From Paramoeba atlantica (lineage: Eukaryota > Protista > Discosea): DNA of 64,000 nt. The notes below the pieces were generated by a model. It did no database searches, was not told where the DNA came from, and saw only the letters and a program-made list of their open reading frames with translations. Made by a program: the position numbers and the translations under genes. Of the stretch, positions 1,523 to 34,600 are shown one piece after another. Location of the stretch: assembly GCA_977017575.1 (NCBI GenBank), contig CDRNVI010000190.1, forward strand, positions 1 to 64,000. Reading direction: 5' to 3'. Position 1 is the stretch's first letter, and the number at the start of each line of letters is the position of its first letter.

Positions 1523-3526
1523 ATGAAACCTTTTTTCTTTCTTTCTCTCCTTTCTTTGTTCCTTCTTGGAGCATCATCACAATCAATCCCTTCTCCTGAT
1601 CGTTCTCTCTTTGATTTCATCTCTGCTGGATCCACCCTTGCTTTTCCGATCGTCTCCGAATGGCTGTATTCGTACACCCTCTTACAACCCAAAAAAACAG
1701 TTGTCTATGAAGGTGGAGGATCAGGGAGTGGGATTCGAAGAACTCTCGAAAATTCAATCGATTTTGGGTTGACAGAGAGATTCCCTTCTGATGAAGATTA
1801 CGAACTGTTTCCGAACCTTATTACAATTCCGTACGTTGGAGCGACAGTGATTCTCATCTTTAATAATCCAACCATTGAAGAATATCTGAACTCTCTTCCC
1901 ATCAACGAAACAATAGGGACAAGAAACTACACCCCACAAAATTATCTCATTCTTGGAAGAGAAACAGTTGCTGATATTTATGGAGGAGAGATCAACTATT
2001 GGGATGATCCGCGAATTCTTGCAGACAACACCCCTGGGCTTGGTGAAGTAGGAGGAGGTTCTCTCTTTGAACATATCCCAATTTTTCGTTTTACTCGAAG
2101 AGACGCTTCAGGGACAACAACTCTCTTTATGGACGCATTGGGTTCCTTTTCAGAGTCTTTTGGAGATGATTATCCTGCAAGTTCTCGATTCCCTTCGAAT
2201 CTCACGTCTCTCCCTGACTTTTTCACTGCGTTTGGGAATGATGGACTTGCCCACGCATCTTTCAATTTGGAATATTCAATTGCGTACATTAGCTCTCCTT
2301 CCAACCTCAACATGGAGTTTGCTCTTATTCCCAATTTTCGAGGACAATTGACTTCTCCTTTGAATGACAACCCTGCTTTGACAGGACTTCTCGATAATGA
2401 AGTTCCAGTCGTCAACGAGAAGAATGAAATCGATGGAGTTGACTTAGACAGAGATCAAATCTACCCAATTTTTGGATTTTCTTATCTTTTAATCAACCCA
2501 GAGATTGCTGTGAGTTGCGAGGGAAGGAGAGAGGCTTTTCTCTTTTTGAGATATTCACTGTCCGATTCGAAAATCAGGCAGATTGGTGAATCGCTTGTTT
2601 TTTTATTACCTTCTCAGAACTACGATGAAGAAGCTCTTAAGATCTTGGAAACTGTTACTTGTGGAGAAGGAATTTTCCTTCTTGATCCCGTGATGGAAGA
2701 GATTCACGAATCAGCTGCTTTCCCTGTTTTCCTCAGTCTGGCCATGTTCTTTCTTGTTGTGACGATCACCAGCTCAGCTTACTTAATGTTCACTCAGCCT
2801 GGAACTCGAAAGGCTTCTATCCTTCCTTTTTCTGTTCTTCTTCTCTGTGGCGGGTTTCTTTGTTATTTTGTTCAGATATTTTGGTATCTTGTTCCAGATG
2901 AAGACTACATTTGTCAGCTTCGCCAATGGCTGACAGCTTTTGGGTTGACATTTGTAGTTATAGCAATGGCCCTTCGACAGTGGGTCTTACTCCAAATCTT
3001 TTTGAGACGAAAACACTTTACTTCTTATACTACATCTATTCGAGATGCTCTAATCTTCATGTGCATCGTGATACTTATTCAACTCATAATCATGCTCTGT
3101 TGGACAGAAATCGATCCGTACAGTTCCTCAAAGAGATCAGAGGACAATTTGAATCAAATTTTTTCTTGGGAATGTCGGTCAGAAGATTCGTGGATTTGGT
3201 TTGGCCTCGAGATTGCTTTTTTCGCCATAATGATCTCCTTTATGATGATCACTGTCTATTTTGTCTGGAAATTTTCTGCTGATCTACCTGGACACAAGTA
3301 CACTGTTATGTCCATCTATAACTTGGTCATGATCTTCATTGTCTTGGCGATTTTATACGCTACAACAATTGAAGGAGATGACGAAGTTGCCATCACAGCG
3401 ATGGTGTCCTTAACTGTTGTGACTCTTTCCTCAGTCGGTTTAAATTTCCAATTGACTGCTGCTACTCAAGCAACAGCGACTGCCAGATCCAGATCGCAGA
3501 GTGGGGTAGACAAAGGTTCCAAATGA
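1523..3526 (+). CDS. Class C (7tm_3, GABA-B/Grl-like) GPCR with N-terminal PstS-like phosphate-binding domain; intronless
   Basis: Signal peptide MKPFFFLSLLSLFLLGASSQ. PstS motifs AGSTL, YEGGGSGSG, IDFGLTE, RRDASGTT and SIAYIS. Seven hydrophobic segments from ~2711, with the class C signature P-x4-C-x2-R-x-W (PDEDYICQLRQW). Confidence 0.85.
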   Translation: MKPFFFLSLLSLFLLGASSQSIPSPDRSLFDFISAGSTLAFPIVSEWLYSYTLLQPKKTVVYEGGGSGSGIRRTLENSIDFGLTERFPSDEDYELFPNLITIPYVGATVILIFNNPTIEEYLNSLPINETIGTRNYTPQNYLILGRETVADIYGGEINYWDDPRILADNTPGLGEVGGGSLFEHIPIFRFTRRDASGTTTLFMDALGSFSESFGDDYPASSRFPSNLTSLPDFFTAFGNDGLAHASFNLEYSIAYISSPSNLNMEFALIPNFRGQLTSPLNDNPALTGLLDNEVPVVNEKNEIDGVDLDRDQIYPIFGFSYLLINPEIAVSCEGRREAFLFLRYSLSDSKIRQIGESLVFLLPSQNYDEEALKILETVTCGEGIFLLDPVMEEIHESAAFPVFLSLAMFFLVVTITSSAYLMFTQPGTRKASILPFSVLLLCGGFLCYFVQIFWYLVPDEDYICQLRQWLTAFGLTFVVIAMALRQWVLLQIFLRRKHFTSYTTSIRDALIFMCIVILIQLIIMLCWTEIDPYSSSKRSEDNLNQIFSWECRSEDSWIWFGLEIAFFAIMISFMMITVYFVWKFSADLPGHKYTVMSIYNLVMIFIVLAILYATTIEGDDEVAITAMVSLTVVTLSSVGLNFQLTAATQATATARSRSQSGVDKGSK

Positions 3527-3547
3527 AAAGAAGATTGTGAATGTTTT

Positions 3548-6500
3548 TTAATCCCAATATTTAATCAAACCATCCCACCCACAAGTCGCAATCCGAGATG
3601 GCTCAATGGGATGCCAAGCACACCCAATACAAACACCATCGTGTGCTTTCAACTTTTTCAAAATTCTGTTGAAAAAAGAGGGGGGGGGGTGTAAGAAGGC
3701 CACATAAGCAAATTAATTAATTGTTTTTTGTGTTTTTCTCAAAAATAAAAAAAGAAAAAAGAAAAAAAAAACCTCGTTGTTCGCCAATCCCATACGTAAA
3801 CTTGTCCTCCAGATGACCCAGAAATAACATACGCACAATCAGGGGAAAAGTTTACTTGACATGCATATCCTGTCCCAATTTTTGTTAATACAAACAAACC
3901 AAAATCTCTTGGAAACAATAATCCCCTCCCCCAAAAAAAAATCCAAAAAGCAGGTGCATCAAAAATAAAAGTAGAAGTTTTTCAGATCAAAACCAACCTG
4001 CCGTGAGATGGCCAGTGAATCGTTTTTTCTTGTTCAAACTAAATCGATTGTTCGCACTAAAAAAAAAAAAAATAAAAAAATTAACAAAAATTAAAAACTT
4101 GATTCAAAAATAATAAAAAAAAGAAATAGAAAAAGAAAAAGAAAAAGAAAAAGAAAAGAGCCAAACCTGTAAATCAAAACCTGATTATCCAAAGATTGAG
4201 CAGCAAACCACTTCTCCTTTGGATGAATTGCAACAGAAGGCATCGAATGCATATGGGGTTCTTGGATCACTTTAATATCAACAGGAATTCCATACTCCCA
4301 AATCCGGATGCTTTTGTCATCGGAAGTAGAGATAAATCTCCTTCCTTCATCGACAAAAAGGACTGTATTTACTGCCTGAAAAAGGAGAGAGAAATTTTTT
4401 GTTATTACATCAAAATTATCTTTTTTCTTTTTTGTGGTTCTTTTGTTTTTCTTTTTGTTGTATTTTTCTGAAAAAAACTCACAAAATACAAATATAAACA
4501 CAATATTTGAAAAGAGAAAGAGAGTAAAAGAAAAGAAAAATGTACCATCAAATGGCGATCATATTCCTGAACAACCTCTTTTGTTCGAGTATCCCACTAT
4601 TTTTCAAAAATGAATCCATTTTGTCTAAAGAAGAGAGAAAAGAAAAAAGAAAATAACTTGAATAATCTTATTATTTGAACAAGCAGCAAGAAATTCATTA
4701 TTATTTACAGGATAAAATTTCACACAAAAAGGGATTTTCTTATTGGTGAATCGATTGATACATTGTCCTGTTTCTGTATCCCACAACTAAAAAAAAAAAT
4801 CAGCAAACAAAAAAGAAATCTTCATTGTTTAAAAAAAAAAGAGATATCAAAATAAAATAAAAGAAAAAAGAAAAAACAGAAAGAAAAAAAAGAAAAAGAA
4901 AAAAGAAAAAAAAAAAACCTTAACAAATCGATCATAACTCGCACTCAAAAACTGTTTGCCATCATTCGAAAAATCAATGGAGCGAACAGCTCCCCCATGT
5001 CCAAGATATGTTCTCGCACATTGTCTTTTGTTGTAAACATCCCAAATCTATCATTTTTTTTTTGTGTCAATAAAAGATATTCATTTTTTTTTGATTTTTC
5101 TTTCTTTTTTTTTTTGATTTAAAATGATTTTGTTTTTTTTGGTTTTTTTGGTTTTTTTGGTTTTTTTGTTTTTTGTTTTTTGTTTTTTGTTTTTTGGTTT
5201 TTTTGTTTTTTTGTTTTTTTGTTTTTTTGTTTTTTTGTTTTTTGTTTTTGTATTGTTTTTTGTTTCTGTTTTTGTTTCATTTTGTTTTTAGGTTTATAAA
5301 AATTGTTTTGGAGATATAAAATCAGCATTAAAAAGGAACAAACCTTAATCTTAGCATCCATCCCAGCAGAAAGAATCAAATGACCACTCTTCGGGAAAAA
5401 CTGAATCGCAGAAACTCCCTTAGTGTGCCCAGACCATGTATGAATTGGTTTCTTTGGCAAGTAACATTCATGTTCCATATCAATTCGTGAAGTAAGTTCT
5501 GTGAATAAAATAAATTTGTTAAGTATTTGAAGAAAACCAGAAAAAAAAATGGAAAAAGAAATACAAAATCTCAACACCAAAAAAAATTCTCATTCAAATA
5601 AAGAAAAATTGAAAATAAAAAATAAAAATTAAACATCCCAAGAAAAAAAATAGAGAACAAAAAAAAAGAAGAACCTTTTGGAACATCAACAAAAGAGCGG
5701 CCAAGATAATCTTTCAATTCCTTTCCATGAAAGACAGTTTTTTCCTCTACATCTTCTGTTTCTTCTTCTTCTTTCTTTTCTTCAGGTTTCTTTTTATACT
5801 TTTCAACCATTTCTTCGGTCTGTCATATTCAGTTAGAAAATTTTCAAAAATCCTCTCTCCTTCTCTTCTATTCTCCAAAAAGAAAAACCAAAAAAAGAAA
5901 GAAAGATAAAAAAAAGATTAAAGAAAAGATAAACAAAAAGATAAACAAAAGAAAAATAAAACAAAACAACAAAAAAGAAAGAAAGAAAGAAAACAACAAA
6001 AAGAAAAACAAACCGGCTCAGGAACTTTATAAGCCTCCAACTCAGGATGAGGTTTCCAAGGACCCTGAAAACTATCCCCCGCAGGATCTTCTCTCTCTCC
6101 CTTTCTCTTTCTCTTTCTCTTTCCTTTCTCTCCCATTTCTTCTCCTTTTTCTTGGCCAGGTAAAAGAGAAGTGACTCGAGGATTGTCGTTTTGGATGAGA
6201 GTTGTTCCTCTTGAGGATGCTGATAATGCAGGATCTTCAGCAGTTCCTGTTAGAAAGAAAGTAAATGATTTTGTTTTTGTCAAAGATCAAAAAGGTGAAA
6301 AGAAAGAAAAGAAAATCAGAAAAAAAAGAAGAAAGGAATAAAAAAAAACAAAGGAATAAAAATCTAAAAAAAAAATAAAAAAAAAATAAAATAAAAAAAA
6401 ACCAGTATTCTGAAAAGAATGATACTGTTGATGAAAAGCAAATTCATCAATATGATCTCGTTCAACAAAACCATTCCAACAATTTTTAGTAAATTCATCT

Positions 6501-30102: not shown

Positions 30103-30355
30103 CTTCTTTGCGTTGCGTGAAGACAAACAACAAACAAAAAAAGAAACCCAAAACGCGAAAAAAACCCAAAACGCGAAAGAAATCCACCTTTTTTTTACTC
30201 CTTATTTTTAACGCCCTAAAATAATAGATCACTATTTTTATAGAGATCTAAATTAGCTTTTTTCGCTCTTTCGCCCTTTTCCTTTTTCTTTTGTCTTTCT
30301 TGTTTTTTCTTGTTGTTTTTCTTTTTTGGAAACCAAAAAAAACGATCACAAAAAG

Positions 30356-31494
30356 ATGGACGACGAAGAAAGGCAAATGTATGAGCACTTAGAGACACAA
30401 CAGTCTCGGGACTTCAATCCCTACACTGATTGTCGGATGTATGAAACTGAGTTCCCTGACACAGACGATCTTGTCATGGTTCGGGTGACTCGAGTGACAG
30501 ACATCGGTGCCTATGTGATGTTGTTGGAGTATAATAACAAAGTTGGAACTCCTTTTTTGAATTCTTTTTCCTTTTTCTCATTTCCTCTAAGAGATTGTTA
30601 CAAAAATAGGAAGGAATCATTTTGCTTTCCAATCTTTCTCGAAAACGTATCCGTTCTGTGAACAAACATATTCGTGTTGGTAAAATTGAGGTGCTCCAAG
30701 TTCTTCGTGTTGATACTGATAAAGGATACATTGATTTGTCAAAGAAGTTAATCCAGAAAGATGATATTGGATTGTGTGAAGAACGTTTCAAAAAATCCAA
30801 AACTGTCCACAGTATTTTGAGCAGAGTTTCCCAAAACAATTCGTTCCCTCTTCTTGAGTTGTACGAAAAAGTTGGTTGGCCTCTTTCCCGAAAGTTTGGA
30901 CACGCTTTGGAAGCTTTTCAGGCAATGGTCCAAGACGAAACAATTGTTTCTACCTTCGATATTCCCCAAGAAGTGAAAGATGATTTGTTGAAATTGGTCA
31001 AACATCGATTGGCCATTCACCCAGTCAAAGTCCAAGCGGAAGTCGAGGTTTTTTGTTTCTTTCAATTTTTTTTTTTTCACTATTTTGGTTTTTCGATTCA
31101 AAATTGAAATTTCATACTGATCAAAAACCTTCTCTTTTATATCAAATTAGGTGACTTGTTTCACTCCTGAGGGGATTGAAGCAATTAAAATCGCCCTCAA
31201 GGCAGGACTTGAAAAGGGATCGGAACAAGACTTTCCTGTCAAAATTCAACTCTTTTCCACACCGACCTATCTTGTCTATATTACGACACCTGATAAAACC
31301 CATGGAATTAACACATTAGAAGGGATACTTGAGGCAATTCAGAAAAATATTGAGGCACAAGGAGGAAACTTTTCTATGAAGAGTGAGGTAAATACTTTCT
31401 TTTAATTTTTTTTTCTGATCAGTTTTTTTTTTTTGAGAAAGAACTAACCCACCATTTTTTCCCCCCCCTCCAGCCACAAGTGATCCAAGTCTAA
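30356..31494 (+). CDS. EIF2S1: Translation initiation factor eIF2 alpha (divergent), 4 exons, ~293 aa
   Basis: CRMYETEFP..DDLVMVRV, GAYVMLLEYNN, EGIILLSNLSRKRIRSVNK, VLRVDTDKGYIDLSK and CFTPEGIEAIK.AL. Last intron 31388-31473 has branch point actaac. Confidence 0.93.
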
Positions 31495-31690
31495 ACACAA
31501 AACCAAGATATATAAATTACTGTCATTTTCAAAAAGACTCTTGATTTATTTTTGTAGTCTCATTTTTTTTTTTTGAAAGAAAACGTTCCATCCCACCACC
31601 AATTTTCTACAAAAATCACCAAATTATTTACAAAATAATATTATTCTTATTATTTACACCAAAAGAAAGCTTTTTTTTCTTTCTGGATCA

Positions 31691-34600
31691 TCAGTTTGGA
31701 TTAAAAGACTCATCAAACTCATAATCAGATGAGAGTGGCAGAGGAGTTGTTCCCTTTCGAAAATCTTTAAAGCAACTTTCTTTTGGTTCTTTTGTGAATA
31801 AGGGACCAGATGGGTCAAACTCAGTGGTTATTTTCAACACAGTGACACATTCCTTGAAAAGTGGAAGAGAAGAGAATTAATTAAAAAAAAGAAAAGGAAA
31901 GAAACAAAAAAAAAATAGAAAAAAAGAAGTAAAAACCGTTTTTTTCTCAAGAACTTGTTGCAAATGTTTTGGTGCTTCACGAGGACCATAGGCTAACAAA
32001 AAATGGGCTGCCTCATTCCTCTCCGTCTTTTCATTCCATTTCACATACGAAATAACAATTTTCCCGAAATTTCTCTCACTAAAACGAATTAAAAAGGTGC
32101 CTCTTTCTTCGTAAGACAGGAGGAGGTCCGCTTCTTTTCGAGTGATAAATCCGAGGACAAGACCTTTCATCCAAAGAGAATGAAAGGGCAATTGATGGCG
32201 AATACGACGACATGCTAATCCAAACCAATTCCAAAAATCATCATAATCTTCTTTACTGATCTTCTTCTTATTTTGAAATCGAGTTTTGGCCAAAAAATTC
32301 AAATCGTTAATCGAAAGAGGGCGTTCTGGCTTGACCATATCTTGTCTTGTTGAACGAATAAAATGGGATTGAATGAGATTCGCAAGATGTTCGAATGTGA
32401 TTTTATCCTTATCGAAAGCCTTGATCTTCATTAATAATCCCTCAGAATCACCCCATTGACTTTCATTTGTAATCACCACAAAAGGAGCAGAGGGAGGGCT
32501 TCGAATGGAGACTAAAGTTCCGTACTTATCCTCTGTCATAAATCGAACACGAACGGTAAAAAATAAATGAGCAATATTCAAACGAGTAGGTTTCGCGAAC
32601 TTCAAATCATAAAATGTTGCAAATCCCTCTTCGTCAAGAGATCGTTCCCCAGCAACAAAAACTTCCTCTCCTTTCTTTGAATCTTCTGAAACAACTTCTG
32701 CTGTCACTTTTGACTCCGTTGAATAGCATACCTTTCAAAAAAAAAAGGAAGTGAGTGATGATCAGAACACTCCTGAAAATTTAAAAAAACACACATCCAC
32801 ACACAGATAAAAAGAGGAAAAGAAACCTTGGAAGCAGTCAACAGTCGAACAAGGGTTGGTTCTTCATGCTCTCCATCCGCACCAGAAACTGTTGTCCCTA
32901 AAATTTTGCGAGTTAAGATTTTTTGAAAGAAAGAGAGAAGGAATTATTTTTTGTGTTATGTTAAAAGAGGGGATAAAAGTTCTAAAAAGCAAACCTTTCT
33001 TGATCGGCTTAGGAAAAGGCTGTTTGGCTATCACAAGCTTGGCAATACAATGAACATCAGTAGATCGTTTCTTTAAATGATCTAACTCTAATTCATACAG
33101 CTCTAATTGCTCCAATTCCAAGCGAAGATCTCTTTCAAGACAATTTGCTTCTTGAATGGTAAAAGGCATCAAAATGGATGACCTCAACAACGACGAACAT
33201 TTGTTTAAACAATCGCTGATGTATGAACGAGCCTTTGAATGCATTGCTACTAGCTTCATTGAATCATTTTTTCCAATCCTCGGATTCACTGGTGTTTGTT
33301 TTTGTTTTGTTCGAAGATCAGACATAAAAGGTTTGATCACTTCATTGTAGCTTTTGTACAACTCATTTAAGTCATAGACAGCGCTTGGTAAAATTTTCCA
33401 GTGATGATGTTGGGGAAAATAATAGGGGTTTTGAGTTTGACTTGAAGAAGAAGAAGAAGAAGAAGATGCTGATGATGATGATGGCGAAGGGGAAGGAGAT
33501 GGGATAGGAGAATGTAACATTGTCCCTCCCCCGTTTGGAATTTGAACAGAACGTCCATGATCTGTTGGAGAAGCGGAATACATGGAAGTGGAGGATCTTG
33601 TTGGGTATCTATTTTGCTGGACTGGATTACTTGTTGTCCCAGAAGATGTTGATGTGTTTGGGGTGGTAACTGAGACAGGAACTGACGTGAGAGTGAGAGT
33701 TGGGGGAGGTGGAGCTTGTGATAGGGACTGCGAGCTGTTTGAAGGGAGAGGTGAACGAAAGGTTGTGGATTTAGGCTGCTGGGATGTTCCTTCTTTTGCG
33801 GCTAAAGCAGCAGCTCTTGTCATCGGTCGCGAAAAAGGACTTTGATATAAAATTATTTAGTCTCAAAAAAAAAAAAAGACAATACAAAAAGAAAAAGAAA
33901 TAACATTGAATAAACAAGTAAAAAAAAGAAAAAAAAACTTGTCTCGAAGAGCGGACCGATCCTCTTGGTCCTCTTTCTTAACGGTTTCTTGGTCTAACTT
34001 CAACTTTTCCTTTCCTGCTCCATAGGATGTTTGCGGCTGAAAAGAACCTTCATCAACCTGGAGAGAGGATGGGGAAGCAGTAATCGAAGGGGAGGCAGAG
34101 AGGGATAACTCCGAATTTTCCAAGTTCATGAGCTGAGAAGAAGTTAAGACAATACCGGGTGGAACGCCACTCTTCATCTGTTCGAGAAACGCTTGCCATT
34201 CCTGCGGAGGGGGAGCATTCCAGCCATCGCTCAATGTGAGAGCACCACCACTTGTTGTTAAAGCAGGAGAATTTGAACTTGTTCGTAAAAAGTCGGAAAA
34301 ATCGATATTTCTTGAGGGTGATAATTTGTCTTCTACAAAAAGAAGATGAACACAAAAAAGAACGGGATTAAAAGAACAAAAAAAAAACAGAAAAATCAGA
34401 AAAGAAGGGGAGAAAAGAGAGAGAGAGAGAGAAAATTTCATACGTGGAGTTTGTGGTGGATTTAAACTTTCCCCATCAGATCCTTCAAAGCCTGTTTTTG
34501 TATGAAGTTCAGTCAGCCAGACTTGCCAAACTTGTCCCCTTCTTATCATCTCTCTCCCCCTTCTTTTTCCACACACACACACAAAACACCTTTGTTAAAG

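Follow-up and report, generated by a model that had tools for sequence, protein, structure and literature searches.

Glu49 and its neighbours in eIF2-alpha lie in one of the most conserved regulatory switches of eukaryotes, which is the target of GCN2, PERK, PKR and HRI as well as of viral mimics. The mimics K3L and vIF2-alpha possess an S1 fold and a KGYID-like kinase-docking motif. In yeast, any mutation of Glu49 is reported (in a 2005 abstract by Dey) to block translational control, so that normal regulation cannot simply be assumed for a protein in which that residue is changed. Together with R88 and V89, Glu49 is among the sites of yeast Gcn- alleles; the yeast protein also carries an acidic tail beyond the residues PPKAVTA. 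Viral mimicry of eIF2-alpha is mentioned in PMC11946776. In the literature on eIF2-alpha in Paramoeba and Acanthamoeba, no description was found of either the loop variant treated below or a tailless form in amoebae.

The locus described here lies in a 64-kb stretch of amoeba DNA (‘the window’, by which the whole of that stretch is meant), and encodes an eIF2-alpha that departs from the canonical protein both at position 49 and at its C-terminus. These departures are considered below in the light of related proteins, of public sequencing runs and of the regulatory surface on which they fall.

Gene structure and family identity

The gene occupies positions 30356-31494 of the plus strand, where four exons encode a 293-amino-acid product; all three introns are of the GT..AG type and of phase 0. 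Its parts are as follows (X1 to X4 denote public sequencing runs, described further on):

30356-30541, plus strand: exon 1, 62 amino acids, with the start codon, an N-terminal extension of about 20 amino acids and the N-terminal half of S1; last residues ...LLEYNNK
30542-30609, plus strand: intron 1, 68 nt, GT..AG; joint 30541>30610 found in X3 and X4 contigs
30610-31047, plus strand: exon 2, 146 amino acids, with the Ser51 loop ILLSNLSRKRIRS, KGYIDLSKK, the helical domain and the first part of the C-terminal domain
31048-31150, plus strand: intron 2, 103 nt, GT..AG; joint found in X3 and X4 contigs
31151-31387, plus strand: exon 3, 79 amino acids, C-terminal alpha/beta domain with last residues ...QGGNFSMKSE; positions 65-114 of the PF07541 model
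31388-31473, plus strand: intron 3, 86 nt, GT..AG; joint found in a single contig, X3 record 17, in which 25 letters follow it
31474-31494, plus strand: exon 4, PQVIQV and the TAA stop codon (31492-31494), without an acidic tail

The translation of exon 2 is EGIILLSNLSRKRIRSVNKHIRVGKIEVLQVLRVDTDKGYIDLSKK, in which the loop portion reads EGIILLSNLSRKRIRSV and is followed by KGYIDLSKK. Codon 49 is AAT (Asn; 30631-30633) and the codon for Ser51 is TCT (30637-30639); besides N49, the loop harbors one further change, a Lys in place of R53.

Homology searches, in which the exons served separately as individual queries or rows, bear out the identification as eIF2-alpha that an earlier note on this DNA had made. 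The Pfam S1 domain (PF00575) matches exon 2 with an E value of 8e-7, exon 1 aligns with the N-terminal half of S1 in the homologues, and the PF07541 (EIF_2_alpha) model is complete: its positions 1-64 match exon 2 and its positions 65-114 match exon 3, each part scoring above the cut-off. The best solved relative, over exon 2, is yeast SUI2 (E 1e-42). Both LSNLSRKRIRS, which places Ser51 in a basic loop, and KGYIDLSKK, the kinase/eIF2B docking motif, are present in the protein and are kept throughout its clade; the KGYID motif is intact in exon 2, as that note had also read it.

The regulatory surface in amoebae and across eukaryotes

The rarity of an altered position 49 was gauged from the best 150 representatives of 50% clusters, 148 of which align at this column. 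Glu is found in 132 of the 148, Asp in 9, Asn in 4, and His, Gln and Ala in one each, and at least 10 changes are required at the position on the tree of these representatives of the eukaryotic eIF2-alpha family. Judged from this alignment, Glu49 is very strongly, though not absolutely, conserved, and because 132 of 148 representatives retain it, the Asn of the window protein is a genuine departure. Lys at position 53 occurs in 11 of the 13 representatives lacking Glu49, versus 23 of the 123 that have it (Fisher p 3e-6, on raw counts). A phylogenetically independent-pairs test for coupling between the two positions gave no signal, with only 2 usable pairs and hence without power, and co-evolution of positions 49 and 53 was dropped, the raw association being unsupported by that test.

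Relatives of the protein were recovered by a profile made from the first N49 matches together with the window exons, each exon entered as a row of its own, and represent three kinds of protein:

Group A: loop EGIILLSNLSRKRIRSV; tailless, ending in ...EPRVVQA; Paramoeba aestuarina, Vexillifera abyssalis, Stygamoeba regulata and at least about 18 environmental sequences
Group B: loop EGIILLSELSRRRMRS; the same tailless end; Acanthamoeba castellanii Neff (XP_004340095.1), Balamuthia, Luapeleamoeba and Dracoamoeba
Group C: canonical loop; acidic tail; fungi, Physarum, Cavostelium and the discoseans Stenamoeba, Sappinia and Dermamoeba

Among the matches listed, the loop EGIILLSNLSRKRIRSV and the tailless end occur together in 20 of the 21 members of the group with Asn or Gln at position 49, and the acidic tail is absent from 36 related amoebozoan-type sequences. 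The survey of position 49 in amoebae that had been called for now gives Asn in Paramoeba, Vexillifera and Stygamoeba, and Glu in Acanthamoeba, Balamuthia, Luapeleamoeba and Dracoamoeba.

Identity to these relatives varies along the protein, amounting to 72-77% for exon 1 (against the N-termini of the sequences P0155, P0163 and P0160), to 79-81% for exon 2 (against P0155, P0154, P0157 and P0160; 79% against Paramoeba aestuarina) and to 64-70% for exon 3. The closest relative among the matches listed, P0155 (80% over exon 2), has Gln at position 49, encoded by CAA at positions 243-245 of its cDNA-type contig L001. That contig reads ...NEPRIVQA-TAA and then continues into 190 nt of untranslated sequence, and so read is an independent confirmation of the tailless end. 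The step from AAT to the CAA of P0155 takes two base changes; within the clade, position 49 is still shifting from one uncharged polar residue to another, with no return to Glu.

Column counts over 21 proteins of group A, 15 of group B and 83 of the canonical kind were used to sort the changes on the regulatory surface. Common to groups A and B are M44I, L61H, V70L, V71Q, R87K, R88L/N, V89I/L and S90Q/K, while E49N and R53K are specific to group A. Kept in group A are S51 (20 of 21), R52, R54 and I55 (21 of 21 each) and R56 (20 of 21), and likewise S57, K79 (19 of 21), G80, Y81, D83, L84 and K86; the stretches S51-R52-x-R54-I55-R56-S57 and KGYIDLSK are near-invariant in proteins that are otherwise 40-50% identical. 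Strict conservation of this kind, of the Ser51 loop and of KGYID alike, argues against a dead switch. In the structural paper on yeast eIF2-eIF2B, whose numbering is one higher than the classical one, L62 (classical L61) is part of an eIF2B-only contact (PMC6513899). The changed L61 therefore falls in a contact made with eIF2B only, and the kinase-docking motif is intact.

Trees were built from the exon-2 region only, with columns 49 and 53 removed. In a 60-row tree the canonical group stands on a 99% branch and group B on a 96% branch, and the window protein falls, with Paramoeba, in the clade starred there. In a 30-row tree made up mostly of named species, the split between tailless and canonical proteins has 100/100 support and a branch length of 0.5 changes per column, the window protein pairs with P0155 (95/90), and the clade of these two with Paramoeba has support of 100/97. 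The N49 label corresponds to a single change on the tree, with the N49 group as a whole weakly supported (54/0), and the tailless proteins of Centramoebia form the sister grouping to the window's clade.

Several further sequences were encountered in passing. P0153 (MDP2439172.1) bears the label ‘MAG: S1 RNA-binding domain-containing protein [archaeon]’; its sequence is that of a eukaryotic eIF2-alpha of the discosean type, N49/K53 loop included, and probably comes from a mis-binned contig. An intronless eIF2-alpha with N49 and K53, P0234, lies at 3001-3795 of locus L002 (GCA_040384165.1, contig JAWVHB010000437.1), and in the tree forms a long branch close to the N49 clade of amoebae; its contig is very compact (92 kb, 20-23% GC), its small neighbouring genes are without Pfam matches, and its source might be a giant virus, or some other reduced genome, to which the gene passed from an amoeba host. 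A very long-branched environmental trio (P0100, P0166 and P0167; stem of 1.6 changes per column) is tailless and has N49, K53, H61 and D88, and its placement is unsure.

Stress control, copy number and the evidence of the reads

The explanation that we prefer, and consider reasonably probable on the strength of the comparisons above, is that the protein is the regular eIF2-alpha of its amoeba, still a substrate of the kinases, with a remodelled eIF2B-facing surface to which the eIF2B partner has co-evolved. It would then be the housekeeping eIF2-alpha of a dactylopodid-type discosean close to Paramoeba, expected to join the beta and gamma subunits into eIF2 and to deliver initiator tRNA; a normal function in initiation is suggested by its three domains, by its expression and by how deeply it is conserved. 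Its present form may have been reached in two steps. On the stem of Centramoebia and Dactylopodida/Stygamoebida, the acidic C-terminal tail would have been lost and the S1-surface changes M44I, L61H, V70L, V71Q, R87K, R88L/N and V89I/L acquired; the branch of Dactylopodida and Stygamoebida would later have fixed E49N along with R53K. Ser51 is presumed still to be phosphorylated by eIF2-alpha kinases and still to be read by eIF2B, because Ser51, R52, R54, I55, R56 and K79-GYIDLSK have been kept across an old clade, and the regulatory pocket of eIF2B probably co-evolved, as the changed eIF2B-facing residues suggest.

A broader proposal is advanced more tentatively: that the discosean branch comprising Dactylopodida, Stygamoebida and their uncultured relatives might run its integrated stress response via a rewired eIF2-alpha/eIF2B interface (N49, K53, H61, L88 and no acidic tail), built on change shared with Acanthamoeba-type amoebae. 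If that is true, then either eIF2B of these organisms reads phospho-Ser51 in a manner that differs from all eukaryotes studied so far, or phosphorylation has ceased to inhibit eIF2B and has a different role.

The second of these outcomes is at the heart of a rather unlikely alternative, the strongest of the rivals, according to which the protein is the same sole orthologue and the eIF2B-inhibition arm has been weakened or lost in the clade. With E49N, R53K, L61H and R88L, phosphorylated eIF2 would then no longer trap eIF2B, and the retention of Ser51 and KGYID would have some other cause (for example, contacts with the ribosome or with tRNA). Such a loss would fit the clade-wide fixation of the changes, the long stem branch of the tree (0.5 changes per column, 100/100), which represents an episode of fast change, and the positions involved, which include the yeast Gcn- sites E49, R88 and V89 as well as L61 with its eIF2B-only contact (PMC6513899). 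Against it, the near-invariance of the Ser51 loop and of KGYIDLSK is what a recognition surface still in use predicts, and position 49 has varied at least 10 times among the 148 representatives, so that its change is tolerated in nature. The protein may escape inhibition of eIF2B, but this would be a property of the whole clade.

Less probable by a wide margin is the proposal of the earlier note that this gene is an extra paralogue beside a canonical eIF2-alpha, acting as a K3L-like kinase pseudosubstrate or as a stress-insensitive bypass. The Asn49 and the missing tail on which that proposal was built are genuine, and it is the 64-kb window of this genome that was read for a canonical copy. 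The protein nevertheless retains all three domains and Ser51, unlike K3L-type mimics, and is expressed and correctly spliced; the features by which K3L and vIF2-alpha pseudosubstrates are recognised (S1 with or without the helical domain only, no Ser and no gamma-binding domain) do not describe it. It also belongs to a clade of probable orthologues, from Paramoeba, Vexillifera, Stygamoeba and the environment, that have an identical N49/K53 loop and tailless end, and its position in the tree follows the groupings of the amoebae. Because N49 and the tailless end are common to this whole group, they are most simply taken as a lineage-wide variant rather than a private decoy.

Copy number points in the same direction. 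Among the matches listed, no named species was seen with two types of eIF2-alpha, and queries with canonical proteins (from Physarum and Stenamoeba), for which the matches listed reached down to about 63% identity and included many without a species name, brought up nothing of the canonical type in Acanthamoeba, Paramoeba, Vexillifera or Stygamoeba. The tailless type appears, among the matches listed, to be the only eIF2-alpha of Acanthamoeba castellanii, because the genome of that species is annotated and only tailless matches from it were listed. The copy described here, read in the 64-kb window, is probably likewise the sole eIF2-alpha of its genome.

The codon and the 3' end were checked in contigs of four public runs (X1 to X4, from two studies); 9 of the 11 public runs listed contain all or part of the stretch. 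At 30631-30633 the contigs of all four runs read AAT, with no alternative letter, and the Asn49 claim therefore stands where it had been placed, neither GAA nor GAG being found. Spliced contigs in X3 (study P2) and X4 (study P1) skip 30542-30609 and 31048-31150. Record 17 of X3 additionally skips 31388-31473 and continues to 31496 through the stop codon, so that the acidic tail is missing at the mRNA level too (PQVIQV-TAA); the far side of the intron 3 joint in this record comprises only 25 letters, and the last joint rests on this one contig. Exon 1 is covered by an RNA-like contig, X3 record 16, which spans 30343-30541. The AAT codon and the short C-terminus are real at both the DNA and the RNA level, because four runs show no other letter and a spliced contig reads the stop.

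Downstream of the eIF2-alpha stop codon, no D/E-rich open reading frame that might serve as a hidden acidic exon was found. Contigs of a minus-strand neighbour's transcript cover 31593-31853, and there is therefore no room for a further acidic exon. With the last joint supported by a single contig on the one side, and on the other an unchanged AAT in four runs of two studies, a spliced contig that reads the stop, cDNA-type contigs of relatives that terminate at the same place and a neighbouring transcript that fills the downstream DNA, an artefact of assembly or gene model (a sequencing error in codon 49 or a missed 3' tail exon) has next to no probability and is essentially excluded.

The samples differ at one coding position only, a synonymous GAA>GAG at 31321. 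Run X2, which has the same organism label and comes from another sample, shows this A>G change together with 1-base homopolymer deletions at 31461 (intron 3) and 31563 (3' UTR), of which the latter is common to X1 and X2; these differences look like strain-level polymorphism. The neighbour itself (31593-32707, minus strand) is a Dictyostelium-type STAT with Pfam matches to STATa_Ig, EF-hand_12 and SH2, whose 3' end is separated from the stop codon of eIF2-alpha by only about 100-150 bp. In X3 and X4, contigs cease to match the window at 31853 and continue with sequence apparently further along the STAT gene; this points to an intron at about 31854 to 31929.

Significance and comparison with known systems

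The protein is a conserved new variant of a very well-known protein, the sequences of which were already public, and probably not a built-in bypass of stress control. An ancient and selectively maintained Asn49/Lys53 version with an altered surface towards eIF2B provides a natural test of which residues of the Ser51 loop are indispensable, and offers yeast geneticists a defined set of substitutions to try jointly; matching changes are predicted in eIF2B, and should be readable from the same genomes. For annotation, the gene is best described as the ordinary eIF2-alpha of its organism, and the label of decoy is inappropriate.

Set beside the systems already described, the protein resembles poxvirus K3L and ranavirus vIF2-alpha in its S1 fold and its KGYID-like docking motif. 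In those mimics neither the phospho-acceptor Ser51 nor the C-terminal domain that binds gamma is present, whereas the window protein has both, and its gene, in contrast to theirs, is cellular and contains introns. Archaeal aIF2-alpha likewise has three domains and no acidic tail (PDB entries 2aho and 1yz6 match at E values of 1e-8 to 1e-9), but is far more distant and is without the Ser51 loop or KGYID; on this comparison the window protein clearly belongs with those of eukaryotes. The tailless eIF2-alpha of Centramoebia shares with it the absence of the acidic tail along with I44, H61, L70, Q71, K87 and L/N88, and differs in having E49, R53 and M55 where the window's clade has N49, K53 and I55. 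With canonical eIF2-alpha (yeast SUI2 and human EIF2S1), finally, it has in common the S1, helical and C-terminal alpha/beta domains as well as Ser51, R52, R54, I55, R56 and KGYIDLSK, and it departs from that protein by N for E49, K for R53, H for L61 and K-L-I for R87-R88-V89, by an N-terminal extension of about 20 amino acids, and by terminating, without the acidic tail, at the point that corresponds to PPKAVTA of the yeast protein.
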